From Octopus sinensis (lineage: Eukaryota), in the NCBI RefSeq assembly GCF_006345805.1, contig NC_043010.1:59148001-59212000 (forward strand): DNA of 64,000 nt, in the 5' to 3' direction. Shown piece after piece: positions 13,358 through 64,000 of the stretch. The notes beneath the pieces were generated by a model. It was not told where the DNA came from. It did no database searches and was given only the letters and a program-made list of their open reading frames with translations. Both the position numbers and the translations under genes were made by a program. Each line of letters opens with the position of its first letter. The stretch's first letter is position 1.

Positions 13358-16290
13358 ATGTTCCTGTCGTTGTCCATTGTATTGTCGCTGGTCCACTGTG
13401 TCCTGACCATAGACCTTACCTACCACGTGGAAGAAGAGAGAAGTCCAGGAACATATGTAGCAGACATTGCTGCTGATTCTAAACTTTTAGACAATGTTAA
13501 ACCATCTGACCAACATTTGATAACATTCAGTCAATTCAAACGAAAGGTGGCACAGTTATTTAATATCACCAAAACAGGTAAACTGTACACTGCTCAGACA
13601 CTGGATGCAGAAGATCTCTGCACATTCAACAAAGAATGTTCTAGAATTATGAAGGTTGTTGTCAATAAAGGAACCAGTGTTTCAAAAATATTAAAAATCA
13701 AAATTGTAATAGAAGATATCAATGACCATGAACCTAAGTTTCCAAAAGCTCAAATTTCTTTGAAATTCTACGAGACAGATGGAAAAGGCACTAAACAATC
13801 TCTGCCAAATGCCATAGATAAAGATGTAGGATTCGAAAATTCCTTAATACAATATAAATTGAAATCAAAGAATGGAGAACCATTCTCTCTGTCAGTCTCT
13901 AAAAGAGCTGATGGTATTTCTTCTCTTAAAATAGTTTTAAAAGAATCATTAGACAGAGAAATCAAAGATACATATTTATTACAAGTCATAGCTAAAGATG
14001 GAGGTTCACCAGCAAAACAAGGTATTTTAAATATAAATATTTCAATAATAGATTTGAACGACAACTCACCTGTATTTTCTAAACCTTTATATAATATATC
14101 CTTACAAAGTACACATCATAAAGCCAAACCCATCATTGTTTTATCCGTGACAGATGCTGATTCTGGGGAAAATGGTAAAATTACTTTCCATTTCAGTCCA
14201 AAAACATCAGATTTAGCAAAAAGCTATTTTGAAGTAAATGAAAACAGTGGAAGCATTTTGTTAAGTAAATATACAAGTTTAGGAAAAAAGAAAACTTATG
14301 AACTATTTATAGAGGCCAGAGATGGGGGCAGCCCTCCTCTCAGTTCTATAGCAACAGTCCTCGTAAATGTTATCAACCAACACAATAATCCTCCATCTAT
14401 TGATATTGATTATGTTTCTGCAATCAATGACAACACAGCTACCATCTCTGAAAACATTAAAGTCGGTAGTTTCATTGCTTATGTGATGGTCACTGACAAC
14501 GATGTGGGACAAAATGGAGAGGTCAGCTGTGATATCAAACATGATACATTCAAACTACAGTCAATGGGATCTAAAGAATATAAAATCATTCTAAACAAAC
14601 CAGTGGACAGAGAAACACAAGGACACTATAACATTCCTGTCTCTTGTCAAGATAAAGGATTACCTCCTCTTAAAAGTGTTAAAAGCCTCTCTATCCAAGT
14701 GACTGACATCAACGATGTACAACCACAGTTCACCAAAGATACATTCCAATTCCTCACCTACGAAAACAAAGATAAAGACTTCCCTATTGGTTTTGTCAAT
14801 GCCACTGACCCCGATCTTGGATCTGCTGGACAACTCACGTATTCTCTGCTGCGTAAAGAAAAATCCAATCTCCCATTTCTCATCACCAGTTATGGCTTCA
14901 TTTCAGCGACCATGTCATTGGACAGAGAGAAACAAGATGTGTATAAGTTTGAGGTTTTTGTCAAAGACAATGGAAGCCCATCTCTGAATGACACAGCGAA
15001 TGTTGTTGTTGAGATTCTAGATCAAAATGACAATGCTCCGTATTTTACATATCCTAGTAGTGACCCTTACACGCTAAATGTGCAGTACCATCCGCAGAGT
15101 AAGAGTGACATCACAGTTTTGAGAGCGTCTGATGGGGACAGTGGAAACAATGCTTTCCTCAGATATGCAATCATACGAGGAAATGATAAACAGTTGTTTA
15201 GTATGAACTCACACAGTGGTGCTTTATCCTTCTCCAGACAAGTTTATCTAAATGATGCTGGAAGTTATGAGCTGGTGTTTGTTGTGAAGGACAGTGGTAG
15301 TCCAGTTCAGTCGTCAACAACTAGTGTCACTTTGGTATTGGCTGTTAGTAACGAGACATCACCAATGTCGAAGAGTGGACCTTTACAATCTTCAGGTCGG
15401 GTCCATATGACATGGGTTATTATCATTGTATCATCAGCAGTAATAATATCAGTGGCTATTGTTGTTTCTATAACGCTGTGTATTATGAAATGTATTAAAC
15501 ACAGAGATAACACAGCTGTTGCCACAAAGAATACAGCCTACCAAGGTAGAGCAGAGATGAAACAATTGTTGTACCAGACTAACACTTCTGTTGCTATGTC
15601 GAGGAATGCAGAAGAGATGGTGAAGCGGAATATCTATTCTGAGAGATCCAAGAGTGAATGTTATGCAGAAGGTCAGCTACAGAACAAATATGAATCTTCA
15701 GTTCAGTCGAGAACTTTACCAAAACCTACCCCAGTAAGTGGAAACATTACATTTTCTCTCTGTAAAAGTGAACAATGAAATCTCTTTGAATATGTTTTAA
15801 CTTCAATAATACATTCCAATATTAAATTGTTCTCTATCCATGTTGATTGTAACTTCCATTGTTTGGTGTCTTCTCACATTTCTTTATCGTTTGTTTGTCA
15901 ACAGAAATACTGTCAACCTGTTGTGGTGACATCAAGTGATGATGCTGTGGAAGATAATGCTACTATGGTTTGTAACTATACATCAGATACAATGTCATCC
16001 AAGAGAAGTGGTAGACATGGAGACTTGAAACATTATGAAGAAATACCAGGAGTATCAGGTTAGTAAATAAACTGGTTTTTTTGACTTCATTTATATTTCA
16101 TGCATTGACATTTAATAATTATCCCTAATTCTTCAATGCATATTAAATTGTTGCCTATGTATACCTATGTTTTAGGATATTGTCAGAAATGTCTATTTTC
16201 TTCTAAATTTCAGATCAAAGTATTTATAAGAACAATGACACAGCTACATCAAAAGATTCCAGTGAAGAAACACCAGTGAAACATGTCTAA
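13358..16290 (+). CDS. Protocadherin G1 (signal peptide, 6 cadherin repeats, TM, cytoplasmic tail; ~868 aa after splicing)
   Basis: ORF 13358 has a hydrophobic leader and DINDH/DLNDN/DINDV/DQNDN linkers, LDRE, DxD and DGG-P motifs, and TM WVIIIVSSAVIISVAIVVSITLCIM. Coding exons are 13358-15733, 15905-16058 and 16214-16290. The acceptor TTCTTAG|G (13316-17) lies 40 nt upstream of the ATG. Confidence 0.95.
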
Positions 16291-17257: not shown

Positions 17258-17304
<47 letters not shown>

Positions 17305-26628: not shown

Positions 26629-29600
26629 ATGTTCCTGTCATTGTCCATTGTACTGTCAATGGTCCACTGTGTGCTGACCATAGACCTTACCTACCATGTG
26701 GAAGAAGAGAGAAGTCCAGGAACATATGTAGCAGACATTGCTGCCGATTCTAAACTTTTAGACAATGTTAAACCATCTGACCAACATTTGATAACATTCA
26801 GTCAATTCAAACGAAAGGTGGCACAGTTATTTAACATCACCAAAACAGGTAAACTGTACACTGCTCAGACACTGGATGCAGAAGATCTCTGCACATTCAA
26901 CAAAGAATGTTCCAGAACTGTTAAAGTTATTATAAAGAAAGTGGATAGTTTCACAAAAATATTAAAAGTCAAAATAGTAATAGAAGACATTAATGACCAT
27001 GAACCGGAATTTCCAGAAAAACAAATCACTCTACAATTTAGGGAAGGTGATGGGAGAGGAAGGAAAAAGTCGATTCCAAATGCCATAGACAAAGATGTGA
27101 GTTATCAAAATTCTTTCATTGAATACAAACTTAAAAAATCTGATGACTCATTTTCCCTGTCAGTGTCTAAAAGAGCTGATGGTATTTCCTCGTTAAATAT
27201 TGTTTTGAAAGAAAAATTAGACCGAGAGATGAAAGCGAAATACAATTTAGAAGTTATTGCTAAAGATGGAGGTTCTCCATCTAAACAGAGTGTGTTAAAT
27301 GTTGAGATTGTTGTCGAAGATGAGAATGATAATCCACCTGTATTTTCAAAACCCCTTTATAATATTTCAATTAGAACCACACACGACAAGACAAAACCTA
27401 TTCTTACTTTGTCAGTGACAGACAAAGATATTGGATCCAACAGTAAAATTACTTTCCATTTCAGCCCCAAAACTTCTGATTTGGCAAAGAAATATTTCGA
27501 ATTGGATAAAAAGACTGGCAAAGTATTTTTATCTAGAATTTCTAGTTTGAATGAAAAAAATACTTTTGAATTATTTATAGAAGCCAGAGATGGAGGCAAT
27601 CCCCCAATCAGTTCTATTGCAACAGTTTTAGTAAATGTTATCAATCAACACAACAATCCTCCATCTATTGATATTGATTATGTTTCTGCGATCAGTGACA
27701 ATACAGGTACCATCTCTGAAAAGATCAAAGTCGGTAGTTTCATTGCTTATGTGATGGTCACTGACAATGATGTGGGACAAAATGGAGAGGTCAGCTGTGA
27801 TATCAAACATGATACATTCAAACTACAGTCAATGGGATCTAAAGAATATAAAATCATTCTAAACAAACCAGTGGACAGAGAAACACAAGGACACTATAAC
27901 ATTCCTGTCTCCTGTCAAGATAAAGGATTACCTCCTCTCAAAAGTGTTAAAAGCCTCTCTATCCAAGTGACTGACATCAACGATGTACAACCACAGTTTA
28001 CCAAAGATACATTCCAATTCCTCACCTACGAAAACAAAGATAAAGACTTCCCTATTGGTTTTGTCAATGCCACTGACCCTGATCTTGGATCTGCTGGACA
28101 ACTCACATATTCTCTGCTGCGTAAAGAAAAATCCAATCTCCATTTCTCATCACCAGTTATGGCTTCATTTCAGCGACCATGTCATTGGACAGAGAGAAAC
28201 AAGATGTGTATAAGTTTGAGGTTTTTGTCAAAGACAATGGAAGCCCATCTCTGAATGACACAGCGAATGTTGTTGTTGAGATTCTAGATCAAAATGACAA
28301 TGCTCCGTATTTTACATATCCTAGTAGTGACCCTTACACGCTAAATGTGCAGTACCATCCGCAGAGTAAGAGTGACATCACAGTTTTGAGAGCGTCTGAT
28401 GGGGACAGTGGAAACAATGCTTTCCTCAGATATGCAATCGTACAAGGAAATGATAAACAGTTGTTTAGTATGAACTCACACAGTGGTGCTTTATCCTTCT
28501 CCAGACAAGTTTATCTAAATGATGCTGGAAGTTATGAGCTGGTGTTTGTTGTTAAGGACAGTGGTAGTCCAGTTCAGTCGTCAACAACTAGTGTCACTTT
28601 GGTATTGGCTGTTAGTAACGAGACATCACCAATGTCGAAGAGTGGACCTTTACAATCTTCAGGTCGGGTCCATATGACATGGGTTATTATCATTGTATCA
28701 TCAGCAGTAATAATATCAGTGGCTATTGTTGTTTCTATAACGCTGTGTATTATGAAATGTATTAAACACAGAGATAACACAGCTGCTACCACAAAGAATA
28801 CAGCCTACCAAGGTAGAGCAGAGATGAAACAATTGTTGTATCAGACTAACACTTCTGTTGCTATGTCGAGGAATGCAGAAGAGATGGTGAAGCGGAATAT
28901 CTATTCTGAGAGATCCAAGAGTGAATGTTATGCAGAAGGTCAGCTACAGAACAAATATGAATCTTCAGTTCAGTCGAGAACTTTACCAAAACCTACCCCA
29001 GTAAGTGGAAACATTACATTTTCTCTCTGTAAAAGTGAACAATGAAATCTCTTTGAATATGTTTTAACTCAATAATACATTCCAATATTAAATTGTTCTC
29101 TTTCCATGTTGATTGTAACTTCCATTGTTTGGTGTCTTCTCACATTTCTTTCTTGTTTGTTTGTCAACAGAAATACTGTCAACCTGTTGTGGTGACATCA
29201 AGTGATGATGCTGTGGAAGATAATGCTACTATGGTTTGTAACTATACATCAGATACAATGTCATCCAAGAGAAGTGGTAGACAAGGAGACCTGAAACATT
29301 ATGAAGAAATACCAGGAGTGTCAGGTTAGTAACTATTAAATATACTGTCAGTTGTGAAGAATTCATTTCAACAGTTTACCCTCAAGTTTCTGGGGAATAT
29401 TTTGTGTCAACAATTTCTGGAATAAATCTGTTTTATTTATTATTTATCTATTCTTAACTAATGAGATAACAAGTTGCTCAAATTTTCAGTTCATAAACTC
29501 CAGAATATATGTTTTATTATAATATATTATTTGTTACTTTCTCATTAAGCAATTAATTAATGAAATCTGCAAGTCTGTGATTTTGTAATGCATGTTTCCA

Positions 29601-37551: not shown

Positions 37552-40469
37552 ATGTTATTGGCATTGTCCATTGTATTATCAGTGGTCCACTGTGTCCTGA
37601 CCATAGACCTTACCTACCACGTGGAAGAAGAGAGAAGTCCAGGAACATATGTAGCAGACATTGCTGCCGATTCTAAACTTTTAGACAATGTTAAACCATC
37701 TGACCAACATTTGATAACATTCAGTCAATTCAAACGAAAGGTGGCACAGTTATTTAATATCACCAAAACAGGTAAACTGTACACTGCTCAGACACTGGAT
37801 GCAGAAGATCTCTGCACATTCAACAAAGAATGTTCCAGAACTGTGAAGGTTGTTGTCAATAAAGGAACGAGTGTTTCAAAAATATTAAAAATCAAAATAG
37901 TAATAGAAGATATCAATGACCATCAACCAAAGTTTCCTATAAAGAATATCAACATACAGTTTTCTGAGAATATAGCTAAAGGTGCAAAACAATCAATACC
38001 CAATGCTATGGACAAAGATGTAGGATTTCAGAACTCATTAATACAATATAAATTAAAATCAAAGAATGGAGAACCATTCTCTCTGTCAGTGTCTAAAAGA
38101 GCTGACGGTATTTCTTCGCTTAACATAGTTTTGAAAGAATCATTAGACAGGGAAATAAAAGATAGTTATTTATTACAGGTCATAGCTAAAGATGGAGGTT
38201 CACCAGCAAAACAAGGGATTTTAAACATAAATATTTCCATAATAGATATAAATGATAACCCACCAGAGTTTTCTAAACCTTTATATAATATATCCATACA
38301 AAGCACACATCACAAATCTAAACCCATCATTGTTTTGTCTGTGAGTGATGCTGATTCTGGTGAAAATGGTAAAATTACTTTCCATTTCAGTCCAAAAACA
38401 TCAGATATTGCAAAAAGCTATTTTCTGTTAAATGAAACCAGTGGAAGCATTTTATTAAGGGAATATTCAAGTCTGAGAAAAAAGAAAACCTACGAATTGT
38501 TTATAGAAGCCAGAGATGGAGGCAGTCCACCATTCAGTTCCATAGCAACAGTTCTAGTAAATGTTATCAATCAACACAACAATCCTCCATCTATTGATAT
38601 TGATTATGTTTCTGCAATCAATGACAACACAGCTACCATCTCTGAAAACATCAAAGTTGGTAGTTTCATTGCTTATGTGATGGTCACTGACAATGATGTG
38701 GGACAAAATGGAGAGGTCAGCTGTGATATCAAACATGATACGTTCAAACTACAGTCAATGGGATCTAAAGAATATAAAATCATTCTAAACAAACCAGTGG
38801 ACAGAGAAACACAAGGACACTATAACATTCCTGTCTCCTGTCAAGATAAAGGATTACCTCCTCTCAAAAGTGTTAAAAGCCTCTCTATCCAAGTGACTGA
38901 CATCAACGATGTACAACCACAGTTTACCAAAGATACATTCCAATTCCTCACCTACGAAAACAAAGATAAAGACTTCCCTATTGGTTTTGTCAATGCCACT
39001 GACCCTGATCTTGGATCTGCTGGACAACTCACATATTCTCTGCTGCGTAAAGAAAAATCCAATCTCCCATTTCTCATCACCAGTTATGGCTTCATTTCAG
39101 CGACCATGTCATTGGACAGAGAGAAACAAGATGTGTATAAGTTTGAGGTTTTTGTCAAAGATAATGGAAGCCCATCTCTGAATGACACAGCGAATGTTGT
39201 TGTTGAGATTCTAGATCAAAATGACAATGCTCCGTATTTTACATATCCTAGTAGTGACCCTTACACGCTAAATGTGCAGTACCATCCGCAGAGTAAGAGT
39301 GACATCACAGTTTTGAGAGCGTCTGATGGGGACAGTGGAAACAATGCTTTCCTCAGATATGCAATCATACAAGGAAATGATAAACAGTTGTTTAGTATGA
39401 ACTCACACAGTGGTGCTTTATCCTTCTCCAGACAAGTTTATCTAAATGATGCTGGAAGTTATGAGCTGGTGTTTGTTGTGAAGGACAGTGGTAGTCCAGT
39501 TCAGTCGTCAACAACTAGTGTCACTTTGGTATTGGCTGTTAGTAACGAGACGTCACCAATGTCGAAGAGTGGACCTTTACAATCTTCAGGTCGGGTCCAT
39601 ATGACATGGGTTATTATCATTGTATCATCAGCAGTAATAATATCAGTGGCTATTGTTGTTTCTATAACGCTGTGTATTATGAAATGTATTAAACACAGAG
39701 ATAACACAGCTGCTGCCACAAAGAATACAGCCTACCAAGGTAGAGCAGAGATGAAACAATTGTTGTACCAGACTAACACTTCTGTTGCTATGTCGAGGAA
39801 TGCAGAAGAGATGGTGAAGCGGAATATCTATTCTGAGAGATCCAAGAGTGAATGTTATGCAGAAGGTCAGCTACAGAACAAATATGAATCTTCAGTTCAG
39901 TCGAGAACTTTACCAAAACCTACCCCAGTAAGTGGAAACATTACATTTTCTCTCTGTAAAAGTGAACAATGAAATCTCTTTGAATATGTTTTAACTTCAA
40001 TAATACATTCCAATATTAAATTGTTCTCTTTCCATGTTGATTGTAACTTCCATTGTTTGGTGTCTTCTCACATTTCTTTATTGTTTGTTTGTCAACAGAA
40101 ATACTGTCAACCTGTTGTGGTGACATCAAGTGATGATGCTGTGGAAGATAATGCTACTATGGTTTGTAACTATACATCAGATACAATGTCATCCAAGAGA
40201 AGTGGTAGACACGGAGACTTGAAACATTACGAAGAAATACCAGGAGTATCAGGTTAATAACTGCATTAGCAATACTTTGCAAATAATTTTAACAAGTACA
40301 AATTGCTGTACACTGTAAAAATAATGTCACCATTCTTTCCATCTATTAACGTATTGATATCCTGGCAAAATCTATTTTCATTTGAATTTCAGAGCAAAGT
40401 TTATATAAAAACAACGATGCATCTGCTTCGAAAGATTCCAGTGAAGAAACACCAGTGAAACATGTCTAA
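37552..40469 (+). CDS. Protocadherin G3 (~868 aa)
   Basis: The true ATG is 37552 (MLLALSIVLSVVHCVLT); the ORF-track start at 37480 lies upstream of the acceptor TTTTAG|G (37501-02). Exons are 37552-39927, 40099-40252 and 40393-40469 (EQSLYKNNDASASKDSSEETPVKHV*). Confidence 0.95.
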
Positions 40470-41081: not shown

Positions 41082-41112
<31 letters not shown>

Positions 41113-41446: not shown

Positions 41447-41480
41447 ATTGGTCTTCTGTTTAGGTCATTCAGCCAATCAG
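41447..41480 (+). promoter_or_regulatory. Putative promoter P4 paired CCAAT boxes
   Basis: ATTGG at 41447 and CCAATCAG at 41473. Confidence 0.6.
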
Positions 41481-41682
41481 ATTCTCACTAAAAAATAGAA
41501 AGAAATTTCTAACAAAGCTAAGCCTTTACATTACTGATGTTATTAAACAAATGATTATATTTTCCTTTATTATCAAATATTGTAGCTATTAAAATATATG
41601 TATAATAGATGTATGTAAATTGTTATTGATAGGAGTAAACAAACATTATCTTTAAGGATAAATACATACAGAATATTATTAG

Positions 41683-41886
41683 ATGGACGTACTCCCACAA
41701 AACGTACAACTTCAGTGACACATGCAACCCTCTCCTAGCAGCAGACTCTCTGCCTGACGTGCTACACTACTCCATCACCATAACAGCCATTGTCACACCA
41801 TTACAGCAGCACTTACAATGGATCTTTCTACAACAATACATCTTTCTCTTTCTCACTGAATAACCAATGATATAATTACTAAAAAG
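41683..41886 (+). other. Leader exon copy 4 (to G4)
   Basis: Same 204-nt block. Donor GTAAGT at 41887. Confidence 0.75.
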
Positions 41887-44800
41887 GTAAGTTTCCATTT
41901 AATCTCTTTTATAATTTTGTTTTATGTATCTCATTGAATCAGTTAGAGATTGTTGTAACAAGATGTTAGAATCTTACATATTTAATATTAACAGGAGAAC
42001 AAAGAGATTCACCAATAATTTACACATCATTTTCATACATATAACCCATACTATTTTCTTTTCATACTTCATTTAATGATGTTGATTGAGATGTTTCATA
42101 TTTAGACTTTATTTCATTGCAACAGTATGTGTCTGTGTAACATTTGTTACAGATATTGATCACTAACAATAGAGAACAATCTCTGCAGTATATAGCAGTA
42201 ATGCGTGCATTTGCTTTTGTTGTAAGGAAGATGTGATGTTGTGTCTATTTAGCTGATGCTGTAAGAAAGTTATGTGAAGATTTTCATATAAAAATATACT
42301 GAAGGATATTTTCTTTAAAGTTGTGTATAATGTGTCAAGTATTAGCAGTGATAAGCTAATGGTATGTTAAGGATTATGGTTGGGTATAATGGAGGACAGT
42401 AAGACTGACAGCTATCAAGAAGTGAATAGAAATATTAGCATGTTGTAGACTACGTCAATGTAGAAAATGTTTATATTGCATATGTTTGCTTCTAAAGCAT
42501 ATTTGTAAGTCATAGTAATATGTTATTTCTTTTTGAACATTCTCTCCTATTTCCCTCTATGATTTATTTATAGTCACAATTTTTTATCTCCTTTTTACAC
42601 TGTCCCTTCAATTTAATTATAGATTTTTGAATTTTTATAACATCAGAGCTTTAAATTTACGGAAATTATGTTTATCTCAATTATTAATCATGTTTACAAT
42701 TCAAAGTGAAACTTCTTCATCATCATCTCATTGTCAAATATATTTCTCAATATTCTGTATCCACAAAGATTTCTGTTTGAATATCTAAACATTTAGTCAC
42801 CAAAATTTGATGCCTGCCCTGAACGTCTTAAACTGTTACACTTTACTCTTTGTTCTTGTAAAACATTCACTTTTCATATTAAACAGCTTTTGTCATTTAT
42901 TCAGTTGTCAGATTTCTGACTTGAATCTCTCATCATTATTTGAGTCCTATTTCTCAAAAACAATAACATAAATGCTTACATTGAAAATAGCCATTGTGAA
43001 TCAGTTTTAAACTACATGACAAGCATGGTAGTGTGTATAAGACATCCACTTTTGAACCATGTGGTTAGGGCTTTAGTCCTGTAGTATGGATGTTGTTAGC
43101 TGACGTCCTGTATGACAGCCACAGATCAACCGATATCTTGTGAGTGAAATTGGTAACTGGAAACTGAAGAAACTCACAGTGTGAGTGGGTTTGTATTTCC
43201 CTTCCTCTTCATGTGTTCTTACTAAATGTAAACAAAGGCCTCACTCTGTCCTCAGCTTGCAGTCCATCATGAAAGCATAGCCAGGCGTCTTGATATGCCT
43301 TCACATGTTCTATAATCTTCATAAACGAAAGGCTCATTCAAACAGTGTCGTTATCTTAATTGCTTCATATAACCATACTCAGGCTGTTTGTTGTATGATA
43401 GACTGGGGTGAGGGTTGTGGGGGTCATTATCTTGCGTGGAAACAAAGAGAGGCATCAAGAAGGGCATCTGGCCATAGAAACTCTGCTCCAACATAGTCTC
43501 ATCTGCTCGTCTGACTCATTACCAAATTTTCACGAGGCATCTCTGTTTATTCACTAGAAACATGTTATAAAGAGGTGATTTTTACAAACCTTTTAGCTCT
43601 AATGATATGAAGTTGCAAATATTTAAAACAATATCCAATGCCATGTGCTAACCTTTTAACTACTGGGCTTCCATTGGACCCTCTCTTGAAACTTAACTGA
43701 GAAGGGCATATTTTTACTTTTCCTCTTCCATATTGGGACACTATTCTCTGCATTGAAGGGAGGTTGTCTGTTAACTTACTCTTCAGAGAGAGGGTTCTTA
43801 AGGAATTAGCACATGATGTTAGATTTAGCTTTAAATATTTCATCTTTATATTATTATAGTTAAGTGTAGGGAGAGCATTTCAGCTTTCATTATATGTTAC
43901 TAGTAAGGCGGCAAGCTGGCAGAATGGTTAGCATGCCAGGCGAAATGCTTAGCAGTATTTTGTCTGCTTTTATGTTCTGAGTTTAAATTCTGCCAAGGTC
44001 AACTTTGCCTTTCATTCTTTCGGGGTTGATAAATTAAGTACCAGTTGAGTACTGGGGTCGATATAATTGACTGGTCCCCTTCCCCCAAATTTTCAGGGCC
44101 TTGTGCCTAGAGTAGAAATAATTATATGCTACTAGTGAGTAAAAAATGTGTGTCTTGAAGGTCTGGCAGTATAAAAGTTATAGCAGTGACAGGAAGTTTA
44201 AGGACTTCACATAAATATATCTGGAATATAAAAGATTCCTGGTTATTAATTACCAAAAAATCAGTCCTGAAAACTGAGACACTGAGTCAATGTGAGTGAA
44301 ATGTTATCCAGGCAGTCATTTTGTGAAAATATAAATTATTTGTCCACAGGATAAGTAAGCACTCCTGGTCTCCATAAGTGAGAATTTGGATTTTGTATGG
44401 TTAATATTTTCATTGAAGTGCAAATGCCCAATAAAAGCCATGCATAAAGCATGATTTGTGGATCAGTTTAGTTCTGCTGCAGATACGACGATTGATATTG
44501 AAAGGAAAGCATTATAGTGGTGGTAGTGGTAGTGGTAAGGAAACTAGAGGATCATTAAAAGCTTTTACATCCTCCTAATGAGTAAATCCAATATTAGATC
44601 ATCTGCTCTCTAATAAAAAAAAAGTCTCTTTTAATTCTTTATAAATTGAAATAATTCCCATTATCTTAATTATGTATCCAAATAATAGCGATGGATTAAA
44701 AAATAAAAGAAGTTATTGTTGGATTACTTCATTGTCAGTATAAGCTGGTGCCTGTGCCGGTGGCATGTGTAAAAAGATTCGAGCGAGGTCATTGCCAGTA

Positions 44801-45379
44801 ACGCCTGACTGGCCCCCATGCCCGTGGCACATAAAAGCACCCACTACACTCTCAGAGTGGTTGGCGTTAGGAAGGGCATTCAGCTGTAGAAACTTTGCCT
44901 GATCAGATTGGAGTCTGGTGCAGCCATCTGGTTTGCCAGCCCTCAGTCAAAATCGTGCAACCCATGCTAGCATGGAAAGCGGACATTAAACGACGATAAA
45001 GATGTAAAACTTGTGGAAAATAATATTTCCATTACGAGTCCATTTAATATCCGCTTTAAAAATCACTCTAGATTAATAGTTGCTGAATATTTGTTGTTCA
45101 GATTGTTAACAAAGATGTACCAATTTCAAAACCTTCTTCCAGTAGAGAAGATGCTTTCATACATAAACGTGCAAGAGGCATACGGTTTGGCTAACCCGTA
45201 TTCCTCTTAGTATTTGCATCAGGAAATTCTTTTGAATGAGTGATGCCACTGGAGTTGATGGAATTGGCATGTTCTGGGCAGAAAATGTGTGTAGATTAAG
45301 TAATGGAGGGAGTTAGAGAATGTGGTAGATGAGTTTAGCATAGGTTAATCATAGGCAACAAGATAGCAATATTGATTTG

Positions 45380-45830
45380 TGTATATACGCTACATTGAGG
45401 TTTGACAGGTAGATGTAAAAAAAAAGGGCCATTTGAAAGAGATCCTCTTGCAGTCATGATGGCAGATGACAGTGACCTTGTTATCAGGACTGGTGACTTT
45501 AATGAACATGGTAAGCAACCACCTCGATAATATTCCAATGTAGATAAAGGCTCTGATTATGTTACACTGACTGAACAGGGATCGTAGAAATGGGATAGGT
45601 AGCTAGTTGTGAATACTAAGAATACATCACTCAGCCTAGACAAGGGATTGGTGACATCAGAGTATTTAATACTGAGGAATGCTAAGTTCTTAGTTCTGAA
45701 TGAACAACATGTGTATTGAGAGATGTTGAGACTACATGATGTGGATAATACCTGAGTGAGACAGAAGTGAAAGGAACACATTGGCTATCAGCTGCACAGA
45801 GCAATAGGAAGTTATGGATGAGTCATAATA
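45380..45830 (+). mobile_element. LINE AP-endonuclease relic (probably RTE)
   Basis: GGTGACTTTAATGAACAT encodes GDFNEH, the GDFN catalytic motif. The surrounding frame is broken. Confidence 0.5.
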
Positions 45831-47039
45831 AAAGGAGAGAGACAGACAGACAGACAGTAAGTGAATAAGAGAACCAGCTTAGCTTGACATACAGTCTATT
45901 CTGAGGATGGTGTGTGAATTGAAGAGCAGACTCCTCTGAAATACACAATTGCTGAAGAGTAAAAACAGCCTGCCCTCAAGAACTAGGGATATGGGGAATT
46001 CTTAGGTGGTGGTCAGCATTGCATCTAGTTATGCCAGATGCTTTGAAAGTTTTGTTCATTTCAAAAAATTGCAAATGTCTACTTCTGATATGTGATGTAG
46101 AAAGCAATTGGTCAGGGAGCTTGGAGAGAAGTGTTAGTTTGTAAAGAAGTTAATCAGGCATAATTATTTTAATTATAGTAGACATGTTAGAGATCATCAT
46201 CATCATCATCACTTAACATCCATGTACCATGCTGGCATGGGTTAGACACTTCGACAGGATTGGATGAGCCAGACAACTGCATGGAACTCCAATGTCTAAT
46301 TTGGCTTGGTTTGTATGGCTGGATACCTTTTCTAATTCCAACCATTTTACAAAGTATACTGTTAGAGATGCAAATAATAATTATAAATTATGGACGAAAC
46401 TAGAGAAATTTCCTACATTATCTACGGAACCCACTCTGTCATGATTCTATATGTTGTTCCATATACTTAGATATTAATCAGTCAGAGTAACTGAGCATTT
46501 AGCATTATCTAGCTGGGGTAGGTATTGAGAAACTATAATATAACATTTATATAAAATAATAAATGATAATTGCTGAATTACATTGAGATAATAGTCTGAA
46601 GTTTAATATTAATAAGATAATAGATGTCCTGAGTATCTCTCAGTTTTCGTTTCTTTAGACTGATGCAGAGATCTAGAAACTGGTACCAACTAAAAACAAC
46701 CTCTTCATCATTCTTGGAATGTATTCTTTGTTATAACTTTAAACAAAACCTTTTTGATATTCAGGATAAATATTGAATGTAGATATCCAGAACCAGTTTA
46801 GTGAATCAAATAAAATTTCACAATACACAGTGGTTACTATTCTTTAATGGCTGGGTTGTTTCTGAATCAATGTGGTTTTGTAAAACAGACGGTTTGTACA
46901 TTTCTCATGTTACACTGATAAATATGTATATTTCAAACAGTGATTTATTTCTGATAATAACTGGAAATATATTTCTCTTTTAGGTTCAATATTTAGTACA
47001 CTTGGATATCTTTAACCATACCTGCATAGAAAGAGCAAT

Positions 47040-50000
47040 ATGTTCCTGTCATTGTCTATTGTATTGTCACTGGTCCACTGTGTCTTGACCATAGACCTTA
47101 CCTACCATGTGGAAGAAGAGAGAAGTCCAGGAACATATGTAGCAGACATTGCTGCCGATTCTAAACTTTTAGACAATGTTAAACCATCTGACCAACATTT
47201 GATAACATTCAGTCAATTCAAACGAAAGGTGGCACAGTTATTTAACATCACCAAAACAGGTAAATTGTACACTGCTCAGACACTGGATGCAGAAGATCTC
47301 TGCACATTCAACAAAGAATGTTCTAGAACTGTGAAGGTTGTTGTCAATAAAGGAAGAAGTATTACAAAAATATTAAAAATCAAAATAATCATAGAAGACA
47401 TTAATGACCATCAACCAAACTTTCCTATAAAGAATATCAACATAGAGTTTTATGAAGACATTGGTAAAGGTGCAAAAAGATCAATACCCAATGCTATGGA
47501 CAAAGATGTAGGATTTCAAAACTCATTAATACAATATAAATTAAGATCAAAGAATGGAGAACCATTCTCTCTGTCAGTGTCTAAAAGAGCTGATGGCATT
47601 TCTTCTCTGAAAATAGTTTTGAAAGAATCATTAGACAGAGAAATGAAAGATACATATTTATTACAAGTAATAGCTAAAGATGGAGGGTCACCAGCAAAAC
47701 AAGGAATTTTGAATATAAATATTTCTGTAATAGATGTTAATGATAACCCACCAGAGTTTTCTAAACCTCTCTATAATATATCCATACAAAGTACACATCA
47801 CAAATCTAAACCCATCATTGTTTTGTCTGTAACAGATGCTGATTCTGGTGAAAATGGTAAAATTTCTTTCCATTTCAGTCCAAAAACATCAGATCTAGCA
47901 GAAAGCTATTTTCAGTTGAATGAAACAAGTGGGGAAATTTTCGTGAGTAAATATTCAAATTTAGGAAAAAAGAAAACTTACGAATTGTTCATAGAGGCCA
48001 GAGATGGAGGCAGCCCTCCTCTCAGTTCCATAGCAACAGTCCTCGTGAATGTTATCAACCAACACAACAATCCTCCATCTATTGATATTGATTATGTTTC
48101 TGCAATCAATGACAACACAGCTACCCTTTCGGAAGACACCAGAGTTGGTAGCTTCATTGCTTACGTGATGGTCACTGACAATGATGTGGGACAAAATGGA
48201 GAGGTCAGCTGTGATATCAAACATGATACATTCAAACTACAGTCAATGGGATCTAAAGAATATAAAATCATTCTAAACAAACCAGTAGACAGAGAAACAC
48301 AAGGACACTATAACATTCCTGTCTCCTGTCAAGATAAAGGATTACCTCCTCTCAAAAGTGTTAAAAGCCTCTCTATCCAAGTGACTGACATCAACGATGT
48401 ACAACCACAGTTTACCAAAGATACATTCCAATTCCTCACCTACGAAAACAAAGATAAAGACTTCCCTATTGGTTTTGTCAATGCCACTGACCCTGATCTT
48501 GGATCTGCTGGACAACTCACATATTCTCTGCTGCGTAAAGAAAAATCCAATCTCCCATTTCTCATCACCAGTTATGGCTTCATTTCAGCGACCATGTCAT
48601 TGGACAGAGAGAAACAAGATGTGTATAAGTTTGAGGTTTTTGTCAAAGACAATGGAAGCCCATCTCTGAATGACACAGCGAATGTTGTTGTTGAGATTCT
48701 AGATCAAAATGACAATGCTCCGTATTTTACATATCCTAGTAGTGACCCTTACACGCTAAATGTGCAGTACCATCCGCAGAGTAAGAGTGACATCACAGTT
48801 TTGAGAGCGTCTGATGGGGACAGTGGAAACAATGCTTTCCTCAGATATGCAATCAAACAAGGAAATGATAAACAGTTGTTTAGTATGAACTCACACAGTG
48901 GTGCTTTATCCTTCTCCAGACAAGTTTATCTAAACGATGCTGGAAGTTATGAGCTGGTGTTTGTTGTGAAGGACAGTGGTAGTCCAGTTCAGTCGTCAAC
49001 AACTAGTGTCACTTTGGTGTTGGCTGTTAGTAACGAGACATCACCAATGTCGAAGAGTGGACCTTTACAATCTTCAGGTCGGGTCCATATGACATGGGTT
49101 ATTATCATTGTATCATCAGCAGTAATAATATCAGTGGCTATTGTTGTTTCTATAACGCTGTGTATTATGAAATGTATTAAACACAGAGATAACACAGCTG
49201 CTGCCACAAAGAATACAGCCTACCAAGGTAGAGCAGAGATGAAACAATTGTTGTACCAGACTAACACTTCTGTTGCTATGTCGAGGAATGCAGAAGAGAT
49301 GGTGAAGCGGAATATCTATTCTGAGAGATCCAAGAGTGAATGTTATGCAGAAGGTCAGCTACAGAACAAATATGAATCTTCAGTTCAGTCGAGAACTTTA
49401 CCAAAACCTACCCCAGTAAGTGGAAACATTACATTTTCTCTCTGTAAAAGTGAACAATGAAATCTCTTTGAATATGCTTTAACTTCTATAATACATTCCA
49501 ATATTAAATTGTTCTCTATCCATGTTGATTGTCACTTCCATTGTTTGGTGTCTTCTCACATTTCTTTATCGTTTGTTTGTCAACAGAAATACTGTCAACC
49601 TGTTGTGGTGACATCAAGTGATGATGCTGTGGAAGATAATGCTACTATGGTTTGTAACTATACATCAGATACAATGTCATCCAAGAGAAGTGGTAGACAT
49701 GGAGACTTGAAACATTACGAAGAAATACCAGGAATATCAGGTACATTAGCTATTATGTTGATGTTGTTTTTTCATCTCAAGTGTGGATTTTTGGTAACAG
49801 CCGTTTCTAACAGTTATATTGTCAGTTGTAAAGAATTCATTTCTACATTTTACCCTCATGTTTTTGGGGTATATTTTGTATCAACAATTTTTGGAATACA
49901 TCTGTTTTATTAAGTATTTATCTATTTTTGTGTAATTAAATCATAAGTTGCTCAAATTTTCAGTTTATTAACTCCAGAATATATATTTTATTATAATACG

Positions 50001-50161
50001 TTTTTTTTTTATTTTTTCATTAATCAATTAATGAAATCTGCAAGTCTGTGATTCTGTTATGCCTGTTTCCGATCTAAATTCCAGATCAAAATTTATATAA
50101 GAATAATGATGCAACTACATCGAAAGATTCCAGTGAAGAAACTCCAGTCAAACATGTATAA
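47040..50161 (+). CDS. Protocadherin G4 (~868 aa)
   Basis: Acceptor at 46982-83. Exons are 47040-49415, 49587-49740 (donor GTACAT) and 50085-50161 (DQNLYKNNDATTSKDSSEETPVKHV*). Confidence 0.95.
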
Positions 50162-50692
50162 TACTTTGCATTATGTAAATACAAGATATAGACTGTTCAG
50201 TACACACACACACACAGACACACACACACACACACACACACATTTGCTATAGACTCTATATAAGAATACAGATTATCAAAGGCAAAAAGATTTTGTAGAT
50301 AAGTCATTATTTTTTTTAATTATCCCTTGATTGCAAAATAGGTGGGGTTTTTAATATAATGAAAGAATGTTTATTACACTCCATAGTACACCAAATTTTC
50401 TATGTGTTGTTGATAACAATAACCAGAGATTATATTCTCTATGGTTTGCCATGTTTACTCTGTCCTTTGCGGGGCTTGTGTAATTCTCCTTCTGATGGTG
50501 TAAAAGTACATAAGGGAGATTTTTTATTTATCCATGAGATGAAGTTAGCTGACATCTTTGGAGTATTATTATTAACTATAAATGCTTTATAACTTAAGCT
50601 GGCAGCCACTGTGGGAAAGCATGATCATCACAACCTCTAAATATATGACCATGTTCATCAGGGAAAGAAATCAATATGAAGGGAGCAGCTTC

Positions 50693-50726
50693 ATTGGTCT
50701 CCTGTTTCGATCACTCGACCAATCAG
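50693..50726 (+). promoter_or_regulatory. Putative promoter P5 paired CCAAT boxes
   Basis: ATTGG at 50693 and CCAATCAG at 50719. Confidence 0.6.
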
Positions 50727-50906
50727 ATTCGGGATAAAACACACAACAATTCACTAACAAAGCCAAGCATTCACATCACTAATGTTATTATCCCAAACAG
50801 TTATGTTCTGTTTCAGTATAAACATAATTCTAGCTATTTAAATATATATCCATGTAAATAGTAAACATCTTCTTTGAGGACAAATACATGCACAGAATAC
50901 TATTAG

Positions 50907-51109
50907 GTGGATGTACTCTTACAAACATTCAACTTCAGTGACACATGCAACCCTCTCCTAGCAGCAGACTCTCTGCCTGACGTGCTACACTACTCCATCA
51001 CCATAACAGCCATTGTCACACCATTACAGCAGCACTTACAGTGGATCTTTCTACAACAATACATCTTTCTCTTTCTCACTGAATAACCAATGATATAATT
51101 ATTAAAAAG
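50907..51109 (+). other. Leader exon copy 5 (to G5)
   Basis: Same block with a variant first ~20 nt (GTGGATGTACTCTTACAAAC). Donor at 51110. Confidence 0.75.
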
Positions 51110-54100
51110 GTAAGTTTCCATTTAATCTCTTATAATCTCATTTTAATTTATTATCACTCACCAAATCTGTGAGATATTACTCCACAAACAATAACTAATA
51201 CAGACAATATAATAGCATCCATATTGTTTTATATGAAAATTAATTGGAAAATGCTGTTTGAAATGATTAATATTTAGACTTTACTTCATTGAAACAATAT
51301 TATTTGTTCCTAAATAATATTTGTTTTATATATTGGTCAGTAACAATAAGCAACTGTGTATATAATGTAGTGATGGAGTGTGTCTTTTTGTTGTGAATAT
51401 ATAGCAAATAGTATGCGAAAGAGATGTGAAGATATTAAATAAAAAGATATTTAGCAATATTTTGCCAAGAGTTTGAAATGGCTGTAAGTGTGTAGATTAT
51501 TAGAAATGATGAAGTGATGTTGTGTTACAAATTTTGTTTAGGGATAATGGCAGACATATTAAGATTAAAATGTGTGACGAGTGAACAACAATGGTGTCGT
51601 GCTGCAGAAGACAATAAAAGGACTAGCTATGTTTGTAACTGAATATATATATATATTTATGTATGTATATAGACAATACCATTATATGTTGCATATCTTT
51701 CATTATTATTTGTATTTGTGTTTGTCAGAAAATTGGAATTTCAAACATGTCATCTTAATTCAGCTGCTTTTTAAAATTTTTTTTTGTGTATAATTTCCGT
51801 CTAAATTTTCTAACATATTCTATACTGCATCCTTAGTATTTATCAGATATTTTGATAATGTTATAAATATGTGACTTTAATTAAAAGTAGAGTGTATTTA
51901 ATTTATAAATTCGGTTTACATATCAAATTAAAAGCAACCTATCAACATCATCATCATCAACACTGTATTGTCTGATATCTTTCATAATAATATTTAAACA
52001 CATAGCTTCTTGTATGAATTACTTAAACTCTAACTATTAATAATTTCTAGTCATAGAAATCTTAAACTAATTCACTTTAGCCTTGATTCTCATAAGATAT
52101 TTAATTCACGTCTTAACCAGCTTTTGTTACTTATTTTCTTGTCATTCAATTGCAATCAGAGTTGCTCGTTATCATTCAGCAGCCCTAATTGTAAACATTG
52201 GTTTAAATTGTTTGTAATTAAGTTAGATTCTACAGTTTAATTCCTTTAATATATTCTCTGAATACTTTTACTTTGTCTGTGATTCTTAAAGCAAATGTGA
52301 CTCCAATTTATGATTAGGATCAGTCATATCTTCATTAGTGACTTTGCTTTCTAAACATAATCACAAGTAGTTTCGGAACAAAGAGATAATCTCTAATCTC
52401 ACATTATGTGGAAACTGAAAGCTTGACTGAGATTTGTGTCTGACAATGGATTAAAGGAGATGGCATAAATTTCTTCATTTAAAATGGTTTTGAAGGAAGA
52501 AAAGAAAAGAAATGCTCTAGATGTGTAAAATAATGTGTTAGAAGTCACGAAATATGGAGAAAGTTTGTCTTACTGGTTGAGAAAAATCCCTGCAAGATGC
52601 CAGGCGCCTATTTAGGTGCACAAATGTGCCATAAGTACAAACAATTACACAAACCCAATCATCCAAGCATTTATACAAATATTTTGCCCAGCCCTGGTAG
52701 CTTCTCCACCACTTCAACACCCTCTCTCTGGTCCCTCTTCATTTCCATGACACCCCTCACCTCTCTTTATTTCACTGATACTGTCCATCTCAAGCTATTT
52801 CTCCTTCACCCATTCTCCACCCTGTTTATCTGGCCGTATGCACCCTTGTAACATGAGACAGTACTGAGTCCTTCCTGTTCAACCCACCCCATCATCCTTA
52901 CCACTCTAATATTAATTAATGGTAATAAATGGTAAGAAATATGAATGGATCAATTTGATCCTTCTTTGAATTGAACAGATGAGAATCAAGACAGCTATAG
53001 AAGTAAGGTATATATAGGTAGTCTATGGTTAAGGACGATGCTGTGGAACCTTTTGGAATGGTTCCTGAAGTATTGAAAATATTAATATTGTTAAGGATAA
53101 CATTTCCTGTGATAAAGAACATACCTCTGACTTCATCTCTGTTAAAGCAGTTTCACCAAGATGTTTCAAGGAAAAACTATGAAATGAGAATGTCAGACTA
53201 AACTGAAGTTTATTTCTCTTTTACTAAAGATAAAAGTTATAAAAATAAATCTTTGATTCAAATGTTTTGCTTAAATTAGTGGTGGTGATCATAATGTGTT
53301 TTGATTACTGTTGCTTAAATCATCAGACACCGTGTGAGGTTTGAGAGTGGAGGAGTTCAGTGTAGTGTTTGAAATGCATGTTGTAAGTTTGAAAGAAAAA
53401 TGTTTCAGTAGAGACAATAAGGAATCTGTTTGTTTTTAGGTTTGCATCTGAGAAGAGTAAATCTGTGTAATGTTGATTCTGTTAGATTGGATTATAATTC
53501 TACCCAGTCTCTACATGCTGGAGTATTAGTAGTGTTGGTATAAATAGTTGAAGATGCTGGAGATGGCAACCACCTCTTCTGGCCATTTATGATTCAAATA
53601 CATATTTGTAATTTTGTCAGGCTCTGAGGATTTTGAAGTCGTATAAAATATATATTCATAGTATTCTAGAAAGATGCACATTTAATTTAAGAACTTTTCA
53701 TTTGTAGAAAATAACGGATGAAATACATTTTCTCCTTGATCACCGGCCACTAATTATTACCATTGTGAACAGTAAAAGAATATTATATTTGGTAAAAAGC
53801 CCTAGCATAGATGGTGGGCAGATGGGGTGGGCAACCCCAGGTGACACTTTTATGGCGGCCCACGGGTGGAAAACTGAAGGGGTGCCCCAGGCAGCACACA
53901 CTCCAGCTAAGCTAGTGGTAAAAAGGCCTTTATGTTGGTGTTACAAAATGTTAGCTCTGGTTAAGTAAGCCATATAATCTGAAAAGATTATTTCCTCGAA
54001 TAATAAGTAATAGGCGCTCATGGACTTGGTATTTTCGTATGACTTTTGTGACAGAAAATCCAGTTAGGAAGGCTTTGCCTGTGCACACATGTATAAGTGT

Positions 54101-55268
54101 GTGTATGTGCGCAGAAGAATATATCCGTATGAGTGTGTATAGCTGTACACATGCTTGTGCATGTGCACATATGTATGCATGGTTATGCATACCAGTGAGT
54201 ACGTATATGTCTTAATAAACGATTGAATTCATCTCTGATATAAGAGTGCATTTGTTTAAGTTGTTCCATCTTGAAAGCCCATGAGAAAGCAAAGTTATGC
54301 TCCTCTGTTTATGAACTCCAAAGTAAGTTATGCACTGCTAATCCCTCATTGGTTGGTGAACAAAATACATGGCAGCCGGCCAGTGAAATGTAGTGTAACC
54401 AAATTGCAGTCTGATATAATTTGCAATGGAATTAGATATTCAGTCCTTTAAGTGATAGAACACCAACCATGGAACATTCTCTACCACTTAAAGTAGCCAT
54501 TACAAGTCTTTTGATGACCCATTTGTACTTCTTTTGTATAATGAAAATAATGGTTCATATTTCATGGTCTTGGTAGGTGTGCATCTTGCTGTTTTCAGTT
54601 GACACATGAATTCATAGCTTTGTATGCATCCATTTTTGGAACATATACTTTCTTATGCAATTGCAGCATGGAAGACAAGTTAGTTACTAAGAAACACTCA
54701 GGCTAAGAAACTTCACTTAAATCCCTATTTTAATATGCTGTCAAAATTTCCATTACTCACAACTGCATCATGTTGCAATTCTAACAGACATTTCTTTTTC
54801 ATTTTTCCCTCTGCATCTCACTGAACAGCTATCAAATAAATGTTTAAATGAAGCATGCATTTGTAGTTTACTTTTGAGTCAACAAATGTCTTTGACACTG
54901 CAATCATTTTAGTTACAGAACATGATCTCAGATCAAAACCCTTCATGTGTATATACATCTCTGAAATTCTTCTTATGGAAAATGTTTTTGGTATTGAAGA
55001 ACCTTATCTAATACCACTTTCCCTGACAAGTAGTTTTTGATTTTTTTTCAGTCATGTTGAGTACATTGAAGCCATTTTATATATGTTTCAATCTATAAGT
55101 AAACTGCCATAAAGGATGAGTCTCATATCCTCTTATTATTTCGATGTTACCTGTGGATTTTAAGTTGTAGTTTATTTTTGATAAAAATTGTTTAATGAAC
55201 TATATTTCTGTTTTAGGTTCAAACAACATATCTTGATAGCCTGAAGTGTACCATCACTCCAGAACAAT

Positions 55269-58200: not shown

Positions 58201-58333
58201 TAATGAAATCTGCAAGTCTGTGATTTTGTAATGCATGTTTCCAATCTAAATTCCAGATCAAAATTTATATAAGAATAATGATGCAACTACGTCGAAAGAT
58301 TCCAGTGAAGAAACTCCAGTCAAACATGTATAA
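55269..58333 (+). CDS. Protocadherin G5 (~868 aa)
   Basis: Acceptor at 55215-16. Exons are 55269-57644, 57816-57969 and 58257-58333. Confidence 0.95.
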
Positions 58334-62432: not shown

Positions 62433-64000
62433 ATGTTCCTGTCGTTGTCCATTGTATTATCAATGGTCCAGTGTGTGCTGACCATAGACCTTACCTACCA
62501 TGTGGAAGAAGAAAGAAGTCCAGGAACATATGTAGCAGACATTGCTGCCGATTCTAAACTTTTAGACAATGTTAAACCATCTGACCAACATTTGATAACA
62601 TTCAGTCAATTCAAACGAAAGGTGGCACAGTTATTTAACATCACCAAAACAGGTAAACTGTACACTGCTCAGACACTGGATGCAGAAGATCTCTGCACAT
62701 TCAACAAAGAATGTTCCAGAACTATGAAGGTTGTTGTCAATAAAGGAACCAGTGTTTCAAAAATATTAAAAATCAAGATAGTAATAGAAGATATCAATGA
62801 CCATGAACCAAAATTTCCTATGAGAAATGTCAATATGCTGTTCAGTGAAGACATTGGTAAAGGTGCAAAAAGATCAATACCCAATGCTATGGACAAAGAT
62901 GTAGGATTTCAAAATTCCTTAATACAATATAAATTAAAATCAAAGAATGGAGAACCATTCTCTCTATCAGTGTCTAAAAGAGCTGATGGTATTTCTTCGC
63001 TTAATATAGTTTTAAAAGAATCATTAGACAGAGAAATCAAAGATACGTATTTATTACAGGTCATAGCTAAAGATGGAGGTTCACCAGCAAAACAAGGGAT
63101 TTTGAATATAAATATTTCTGTAATAGATGTTAATGATAACCCACCAGAGTTTTCTAAACCTCTATACAATATATCCATACAAAGTACACATCATAAGTCT
63201 AAACCCATCATTGTTTTGTCTGTAACAGATGCTGATTCTGGTGAAAATGGTAAAATTTTTTTTCATTTCAGTCCCAAGACATCAGATCTAGCAAAAAGCT
63301 ATTTTCAGTTAAATGAAACCAACGGGAATATTTTATTAAGCAAATATACTAGTCTGAGTAAAAAAAAAACCTACGAATTGTTTATAGAAGCCAGAGATGG
63401 GGGCACTCCACCCTTTAGTTCCATAGCAACAGTTCTGGTAAATGTTATCAACCAACACAATAATCCTCCATCTATTGATATTGATTATGTTTCTGCAATC
63501 AATGACAACACAGCTACCATTTCTGAAAACATCAAAGTCGGTAGTTTCATTGCTTATGTGATGGTCACTGACAATGATGTGGGACAAAATGGAGAGGTCA
63601 GCTGTGATATCAAACATGATACGTTCAAACTACAGTCAATGGGATCTAAAGAATATAAAATCATTCTAAACAAACCAGTGGACAGAGAAACACAAGGACA
63701 CTATAACATTCCTGTCTCTTGTCAAGATAAAGGATTACCTCCTCTTAAAAGTGTTAAAAGCCTCTCTATCCAAGTGACTGACATCAACGATGTACAACCA
63801 CAGTTTACCAAAGATACATTCCAATTCCTCACCTACGAAAACAAAGATAAAGACTTCCCTATTGGTTTTGTCAATGCCACTGACCCTGATCTTGGATCTG
63901 CTGGACAACTCACATATTCTCTGCTGCGTAAAGAAAAATCCAATCTCCCATTTCTCATCACCAGTTATGGCTTCATTTCAGCGACCATGTCATTGGACAG
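62433..64000 (+). CDS. Protocadherin G6, 5' part (signal peptide, EC1-EC4, part of EC5), running off the window end
   Basis: Acceptor TTTTAG|G at 62379-80 and ATG at 62433 (MFLSLSIVLSMVQCVLTIDLTYHV...). The frame was hand-checked through the T8 and A10 runs in EC3 and stays open. It is absent from the ORF track because it has no stop inside the window. Confidence 0.92.
   Translation, partial: MFLSLSIVLSMVQCVLTIDLTYHVEEERSPGTYVADIAADSKLLDNVKPSDQHLITFSQFKRKVAQLFNITKTGKLYTAQTLDAEDLCTFNKECSRTMKVVVNKGTSVSKILKIKIVIEDINDHEPKFPMRNVNMLFSEDIGKGAKRSIPNAMDKDVGFQNSLIQYKLKSKNGEPFSLSVSKRADGISSLNIVLKESLDREIKDTYLLQVIAKDGGSPAKQGILNINISVIDVNDNPPEFSKPLYNISIQSTHHKSKPIIVLSVTDADSGENGKIFFHFSPKTSDLAKSYFQLNETNGNILLSKYTSLSKKKTYELFIEARDGGTPPFSSIATVLVNVINQHNNPPSIDIDYVSAINDNTATISENIKVGSFIAYVMVTDNDVGQNGEVSCDIKHDTFKLQSMGSKEYKIILNKPVDRETQGHYNIPVSCQDKGLPPLKSVKSLSIQVTDINDVQPQFTKDTFQFLTYENKDKDFPIGFVNATDPDLGSAGQLTYSLLRKEKSNLPFLITSYGFISATMSLD

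Follow-up and report, generated by a model that had tools for sequence, protein, structure and literature searches.

We analysed a stretch of 64,000 nucleotides (nt) of the Octopus sinensis genome (CM016872.1:59148001-59212000; hereafter, the window), in which the large reading frames all lie on the + strand and six of them are paralogues arranged head-to-tail. They are six units of an octopod protocadherin sub-cluster; protocadherins function in neuronal adhesion. The pattern of divergence in their large first exons is very probably the product of germline gene conversion between loci, which would have homogenised the flanks around an old variable block and would have copied short patches within it. 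We find a contrast in divergence between block and flanks, a statistically significant mosaic of shared tracts within the block that is also present in independent assemblies, and constant regions that are specific to each species.

Each unit encodes six cadherin repeats (EC1 to EC6) and a transmembrane segment and is made up of one large exon followed by two small 3' exons, a private pair of exons 2 and 3 being found behind every gene. The database matches of the window genes are octopod protocadherins, and the features of that family, namely an N-terminal Cadherin_2-type EC1, six repeats in total, and a single transmembrane segment, are all present. The translation of the fourth gene, G4, contains a Pfam Cadherin_2 domain and five Cadherin domains, followed by a hydrophobic segment after EC6. 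It aligns over 640 residues with the protocadherin EC1-6 structures 6vg1, 6vg4, and 6e6b (E values of 1e-86 to 1e-92); its closest solved structures are delta-2 and clustered protocadherin ectodomains. Both G4 and G5 are identical to annotated O. sinensis proteins up to the splice donor, beyond which the open frame runs on for another 45 nt. The first exons are as follows:

13358..15733, + strand: G1 exon 1, 792 codons, donor CCA/GTAAGT; variable block 13643-14497
26629..29000, + strand: G2 exon 1, with a divergent "G2-type" variable block at 26914-27765 and a frameshifting 1-nt deletion after 28139
37552..39927, + strand: G3 exon 1; variable block 37837-38691
47040..49415, + strand: G4 exon 1; variable block 47325-48179; identical to annotated protein P0134
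55269..57644, + strand: G5 exon 1; variable block 55554-56408; identical to P0125/P0128
62433..64000, + strand: G6 exon 1, truncated by the end of the window; variable block 62718-63572

For comparison we used the Octopus vulgaris array with 14 copies of exon 1 (U1-U9 and Va-Ve), five more O. sinensis copies (S1-S5), two Argonauta hians copies, and one Octopus bimaculoides copy (Ob1), with one assembly per species. Collinear flanking DNA identifies the positional pairs G1/U8, G2/U9, G3/Va, G5/Vd, and G6/Ve.

Variable sites are restricted to columns ~286-1140 of the exon, which correspond to the end of EC1, EC2, EC3, and the beginning of EC4. Within this block the genes differ from each other by 9-14% (G2 by 25%), as compared with less than 1% in the flanks, G2 included. 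Synonymous divergence (dS) in the block spans 0.31-1.24 overall, with values of 0.31-0.53 among the window paralogues and of 1.0-1.2 against G2; in the flanks it amounts to 0.01-0.11, with means of 0.07 and 0.04, and the mean contrast between block and flanks is about 17-fold. The ratio of nonsynonymous to synonymous divergence (dN/dS) in the block is ~0.15. Five units share about 98% identity in intron 1, and the homogenised 3' portion extends past it, as seen for G4:

48180..49739, + strand: homogenised 3' block of G4, from EC4 to the cytoplasmic part, including intron 1 and exon 2; 98-99.8% identical among paralogues
49587-49739 and 50078-50158 (span 49587..50158), + strand: G4 exons 2 and 3

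Taken together, the dS contrast and the near-identical intron 1 indicate that the copies are old and that their constant parts have been homogenised. Since the intron is identical as well, protein constraint cannot account for the identity. In a multiple alignment of five units, most of the DNA upstream of the start codon and between the genes fails to align; some pairs of units retain about 95% identity downstream.

The block itself is not uniform. Three islands of high dS, at codons 101-160, 221-240, and 281-340, are separated by partly homogenised stretches, with dS troughs at the conserved codons 161-220. Hypermutation of the variable block could be rejected, because the clean orthologue pair G5/Vd shows about equal divergence in its variable (10 differences in 855 sites) and its remaining, constant parts (11 in 1566). 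Overall positive selection was likewise rejected: dN/dS stayed under 1 in all of the 20-codon windows tested, which reached to codon 520.

The constant regions are specific to each lineage. Over amino acids 381-790, paralogues differ by 0.3% within Octopus and by 0.7% within A. hians, whereas the difference between the two is 10.6% (minimum 9.8%). The Argonauta pair has a dS of 0.60 in the variable block versus 0.04 in the constant part, and the constant-region dS between Octopus and Argonauta is ~0.33-0.36. In its variable block, the G2 type resembles three Argonauta genes more than any other Octopus paralogue, and it holds its identity through all segments of the block, which the other genes do not. 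This fits a lineage that has become too diverged for recombination inside the block while its flanks are still being homogenised. Signs of concerted evolution found here are a segmental dS contrast, homogenised noncoding DNA, species-specific substitutions in the paralogues, and significant shared tracts together with a spatial clustering of compatible sites.

One of the strongest shared tracts links G4 and G6:

47453..47521, + strand: 69-nt tract in G4, exon-1 columns 414-482, N-terminal part of EC2, EDIGKGAKRSIPNAMDKDVGFQ; identical to O. vulgaris Vb
62846..62914, + strand: the same 69-nt tract in G6; Ve and Ob1 each differ from it solely at column 469

A sequence-only reading of this DNA had claimed that the two segments are identical over 69 nt, which is exact, and had described a change of partner at either edge, which we also find. 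Immediately 5', G4 equals G3 over 24 nt (columns 382-405), and G6 and G5 have TTTCCTATGAG in common (11 nt); 3' of the tract, at columns 483 and 486, G6 has the G1 form and G3, G4, and G5 have the other. Its list of motifs shared in EC3 stands at the protein level: LLREYS occurs in G3 and G5, LLSKYTSL in G1 and G6, PVFSKP in G1 and G5 and also in G2, and PEFSKP in G3, G4, and G6. At the DNA level, however, LLSKYTSL in G1 and G6 is not a shared tract, because the two genes have 5 synonymous differences in its 24 nt. The LLREYS of G3 and G5 is backed by 16 identical nucleotides, and the PVF/PEF alternation is a polymorphism of 1-2 nt.

Nowhere is the gene more variable than where this tract is located: there, 111 within-species paralogue pairs have a median of 14 differences in 69 sites and G4 and G6 have 0; directly 5' of it, these two genes differ at 14 of 53 sites. 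When polymorphic sites were permuted, the G4-G6 run of 32-38 polymorphic sites compared with an expected longest run of 8-15 (p<0.0002), and after Bonferroni correction among 10 O. sinensis paralogues it retained p=0.009. No other pair among the six window genes survives correction for multiple testing. At the same two columns that mark its 3' edge, G5 and Vd differ from each other: the sites, 3 nt apart at window positions 55751 and 55754 (columns 483 and 486), carry in each orthologue one of two forms that are found in other paralogues, and this difference could be a very short conversion patch.

The statement that no single tree fits the variable block was borne out by the pairwise homoplasy index (PHI), a partition-incongruence test, and a GENECONV-like permutation test, all of them our own implementations and not the published programs. 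A single tree is rejected by them, if only weakly where the six window genes are taken alone; with 10-14 paralogues per species the rejection is strong. For the window genes, 54-55% of the informative site pairs are incompatible, PHI gives p=0.005-0.035, varying with window size, and p=0.009 was obtained in the incongruence test, which compared five partitions over all 105 trees. Once 9-14 paralogues per species are included, PHI reaches z=-8 to -12. In the GENECONV-like test without G2-type genes, Bonferroni correction leaves 3 of the 45 pairs in O. sinensis and 5 of the 66 in O. vulgaris significant; at a nominal p<0.01 the numbers are 14 and 11 pairs, versus 0.5 and 0.7 expected. The shared tracts are 26-130 nt long. 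Many of them are found at the ragged edges of the block (columns 268-350 and 1000-1100), and the two strongest, G4-G6 (414-482) and U1-Va (382-470, 89 nt), are both located in the hypervariable segment. Exchange had been proposed to take place among neighbours. We find no support for this: similarity and divergence in the variable block are independent of physical distance along the array (Mantel p=0.19-0.42), and U1 and Va are separated by ~110 kb.

The G4/G6 tract is carried by G4, G6, Vb, Ve, and Ob1, and P0121 is a further O. sinensis gene of the tract type. Between G4 and its orthologue Vb there are zero differences across columns 414-514; G6 and Ve have a single difference in the tract, at column 469, and the Ve-like O. 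bimaculoides copy Ob1, located on a scaffold, has the tract with that same difference. Two adjacent Argonauta genes contain the same tract type with 8-9 differences. The O. vulgaris assembly was made independently from Oxford Nanopore Technologies (ONT), 10x, and Omni-C data (PMC10700109), and the presence of the tract in the O. vulgaris orthologues and in the O. bimaculoides copy means that it is germline and not an assembly artefact. With O. sinensis and O. vulgaris having diverged 2.5 million years ago and O. bimaculoides about 34 million years ago (PMC10700109), both genes already carried the tract before the sinensis/vulgaris split and have passed it on ever since; on the G6 side it is older still, dating from before the divergence of O. 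bimaculoides.

Other patches changed after O. sinensis and O. vulgaris had separated. In the variable block, positional orthologues have 10 (G5/Vd), 37 (G4/Vb), 52 (G6/Ve), and 88 (G3/Va) differences, and this divergence is uneven and clustered along the block:

13643..13837, + strand: replaced segment in G1, columns 285-480; 52 of 195 sites (27%) differ from the positional orthologue U8
47356..47364, + strand: first cluster of differences between G4 and Vb, columns 317-325; G4 has the Va/Vc state
48126..48164, + strand: second cluster of differences between G4 and Vb, columns 1087-1125, LSEDTR motif; G4 is mostly Va-like
62811..62845, + strand: recent patch in G6, columns 379-413, abutting the 5' edge of the 69-nt tract; nine G6-derived changes in 35 nt

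Outside the replaced segment, G1 and U8 differ by 2-9% in the flanks and by 4-9% in the rest of the block. A divergence of 27% in one segment against 2-9% in the flanks indicates that this segment was replaced in one of the two lineages after the species split. Within the second G4 cluster, the state of G4 is unique at columns 1113 and 1125, and painting with a copying model recovered the same switches in G4. The changes in the recent G6 patch were polarised relative to Ve with Ob1 as the outgroup; the best donor type sampled, U4, matches 6 of the 9.

Copy number has changed as well. In window 47032-61092, the DNA upstream of G4 is collinear with that of Vb and the downstream DNA with that of Vc, which gives O. 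vulgaris an additional unit at this place. U7 lies in DNA that is missing from O. sinensis between G1 and a further paralogue upstream, G0. Both differences point to unequal crossing-over or to assembly collapse.

The preferred explanation of the mosaic within the block, judged from sequence, is short-tract, non-reciprocal exchange in the germline. Interlocus (non-allelic) conversion between paralogous exons would keep the N-terminal two-thirds of EC1 near-identical in all copies and would likewise homogenise the portion from EC4 through exon 2, intron 1 included. The end of EC1, EC2-EC3, and the start of EC4 would escape this homogenisation, and this block is old. Patches of tens to about 130 nt would still be copied inside the block between members other than the G2 type, so that each gene is a mosaic and has different closest relatives in different parts; the 69-nt identity of G4 and G6 would be one such patch. 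The probable route is repair of meiotic breaks on a paralogous template, anchored by the identical flanks. Selection on homophilic recognition presumably keeps the block diverse, EC1-EC4 being the trans interface of other protocadherins, and by analogy we infer that EC2-EC3 may determine binding specificity in the octopus genes.

Several observations weigh against this explanation or limit it. Taken alone, the six window genes give a modest patchwork in which only G4-G6 is individually significant, and their segment trees differ by single steps, each best tree being one step ahead. A star-like radiation would account for the spread of pairwise distances in two of the three hypervariable segments. 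Distances in different segments are uncorrelated among the non-G2 genes and strongly correlated once G2-type genes are included; because two of the three segments are star-like, the missing correlation does not by itself prove shuffling. No perfect donor of the recent G6 patch was found among the 25 sampled paralogues. Positional orthology is complicated by the difference in copy number between G4 and Vb plus Vc, and the region upstream of G3/Va is more diverged, at 5-7.5%. Errors may be present in arrays of this kind in both assemblies, that of O. sinensis (PacBio) and that of O. vulgaris (ONT). Finally, the sequences give no direction for individual transfers, and in sequence alone gene conversion and closely spaced double crossovers look alike.

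What the patches do is a separate matter from how they arose. The same molecular process may operate with the patchwork as a mere by-product: conversion would be mainly homogenising, selection would purge most tracts from the block, and the survivors would be neutral leakage. We give this slightly less than an even chance. Because the dominant signal is homogenisation of the flanks around a protected block, the patchwork may be such leakage and not a dedicated generator of diversity, and the concentration of many significant tracts at the ragged edges, the dS troughs at conserved codons, and the dN/dS of less than 1 throughout the windows tested point the same way. Against it, the G4-G6 and U1-Va tracts lie in the most variable segment, carry amino-acid differences, and do bring its two halves together in combinations that are new. 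On the sequences at hand, the patches may be a source of new specificities or neutral leakage, with the balance between the two roughly even. A stronger proposal is that octopods convergently evolved the regime of the vertebrate clustered protocadherins, and that micro-conversion among at least 25 paralogues recombines old trans-specific hypervariable types, of which EDIGKG[A/T]KRS, in common with Argonauta, is an example, so creating new homophilic specificities that are selected, in the manner of motif shuffling in MHC genes; we consider this possible but doubtful.

Other origins of the mosaic are less probable. If unequal crossing-over of tandem units had made chimeras, the mosaic would be the sum of many single-breakpoint events. 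The differing copy number, with the extra O. vulgaris unit at G4 and the additional DNA containing U7, is in keeping with this, but patches of 26-130 nt with divergent sequence on both sides would each require two very close crossovers, and most intergenic DNA between units is unalignable, which fits old duplicates with local copying; we regard this origin as unlikely. A single gene tree with homoplasy, or with convergent selection on the same residues, could explain motifs that are common at the protein level only, such as LLSKYTSL in G1 and G6, and would suit the star-like distances in two segments. It is nevertheless very unlikely, as the 69-nt identity covers all synonymous sites in a stretch where paralogue pairs typically differ at 14 positions, and all three kinds of test reject a single tree. 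The shared tracts might also be assembly artefacts, chimeric or collapsed consensus in a repetitive array with ~1.5 kb of near-identical sequence per unit, where a 1-nt deletion has shortened a C run of G2 and 1-nt indels occur in O. vulgaris copies. Yet the tract is present in both orthologues of the independent O. vulgaris assembly (PMC10700109) and on an O. bimaculoides scaffold, and consensus errors would not yield 69-nt patches flanked by 20-26% divergence, which makes this extremely unlikely. The sequence-only reading had further suggested that exchange is possibly also somatic, which would be a programmed diversification, for example in neurons. Germline-derived assemblies of three species all have the flagged tract fixed (O. 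bimaculoides, O. sinensis, and both orthologues of O. vulgaris), whereas somatic conversion of the chicken immunoglobulin type produces tracts that are absent from the germline; no dedicated array of donor pseudogenes or other special feature was seen. The suggestion finds no support, and its probability is vanishingly small.

Some further features of the array concern the gene models. The window starts within exon 1 of G0, the counterpart by collinearity of O. vulgaris U6. The G0 frame stays open to 825, and exons 2 and 3 follow at about 952-1104 and 1278-1358. At 28139-28140, G2 has one C fewer in a CCC run that is intact in all other copies, and the frame shifts after codon 505. The annotated model P0012 leaves out this region, and the O. 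vulgaris orthologue U9 (P0137) is intact; the frameshift is either that of a young pseudogene or a long-read assembly error. Several O. vulgaris copies have frame indels of 1-2 nt (among them Va at column 85, Vb at column 674, and U5, U6, and Vc), which may be pseudogenes or residual ONT errors. In G3, an in-frame ATG at 37480, 72 nt 5' of the start common to the other copies, lengthens the open frame to 830 codons (extension 37480-37551). In the region of G3 and G4 (37552-49415), the annotated isoform P0132 follows G3 up to LLREYS and is G4-like beyond, and the annotated gene of P0134 covers the first exons of both G3 and G4; these models may be an artefact of the near-identical constant parts. 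Past the exon-1 donor, the open frame runs for 14 codons (VSGNITFSLCKSEQ) to a stop (G4 49416-49460). As this extension is identical in all five complete copies (G1, G2, G3, G4, and G5), a transcript left unspliced would give the protein a short alternative tail.

Each gene unit also has one copy of a ~310-nt element, 0.7-1.6 kb 3' of exon 3 and always on the + strand:

2954-3238, 17284-17593, 30370-30650, 41641-41924, 50836-51145, and 58998-59307, + strand: copies of the ~310-nt element

The window copies are 90-99% identical, and their 3' end, AAG/GTAAGT, resembles a splice donor. A 20-nt core occurs about once per unit in all O. sinensis and O. vulgaris loci fetched and was not found in the Argonauta locus; a scan of the element against Rfam gave no match. 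It could be a noncoding exon or a promoter-associated element. At vertebrate clustered protocadherin loci, promoters are chosen stochastically by way of a conserved element that accompanies each variable exon.

Short-tract conversion between loci, with tracts of tens to a few hundred nucleotides, is known from the MHC, KIR, and immunoglobulin V families, and the octopus genes resemble these in showing a patchwork of short polymorphic motifs among paralogues, with old types that persist across species. Those families are immune genes. In chickens and rabbits, immunoglobulin conversion is somatic and AID-dependent; in the octopus genes, all that was seen is germline and evolutionary. Arthropod Dscam1 produces many homophilic isoforms through mutually exclusive splicing of exon arrays in one gene. 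The functional analogy is that a few recognition domains vary on a constant scaffold, but in the octopus the diversity resides in separate genes that exchange tracts.

The closest likeness is to the clustered protocadherins of vertebrates, for which gene conversion and concerted evolution have been described (Noonan et al. 2004, as summarised in PMC4978886). In these clusters dS is highest in EC2-EC3 and lowest in EC5-EC6, and EC2-EC3, which set homophilic specificity, are excluded from homogenisation (PMC4978886). The octopod array likewise consists of tandem paralogous ectodomain exons with the lowest dS in the membrane-proximal part and the highest in EC2-EC3, from which homogenisation is kept out. 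Several differences set it apart. In octopods, complete genes have expanded independently (PMC9068888); with 3' exons private to each gene, the locus does not belong to the vertebrate type, in which many variable first exons are spliced to one shared constant set, in agreement with PMC9068888. Most of octopod EC1 is homogenised too, and short mosaic patches are documented inside the protected block. The octopod dS contrast of ~17-fold compares with 2-5-fold in Xenopus groups and with ratios termed "comparable" for mouse (PMC4978886).

For cephalopod arrays, recent duplication or gene conversion has been suggested, in general terms only, for very similar clustered genes and species-specific clades (Albertin et al. 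2022, PMC9068888), and the same suggestion is attributed to Albertin et al. 2015 in PMC6339937. In the literature on cephalopod protocadherins that we searched, we found no domain-resolved analysis, that is, none of the contrast between constant and variable parts, of tract statistics, or of dating through orthologues. The array is a convergent and apparently undescribed cephalopod example of the pattern of the vertebrate clustered protocadherins. One implication is that trees built from whole cephalopod protocadherin sequences reflect conversion and not the history of duplication. The likeness also offers indirect evidence, by analogy, that the octopus proteins may work as a homophilic recognition code with its specificity in EC2-EC3. 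Protocadherins expanded independently in cephalopods and vertebrates, both of which have large nervous systems, and the octopod arrays and vertebrate clusters share one evolutionary regime, with uniform constant parts and with EC2-EC3 diverse and partly reshuffled.

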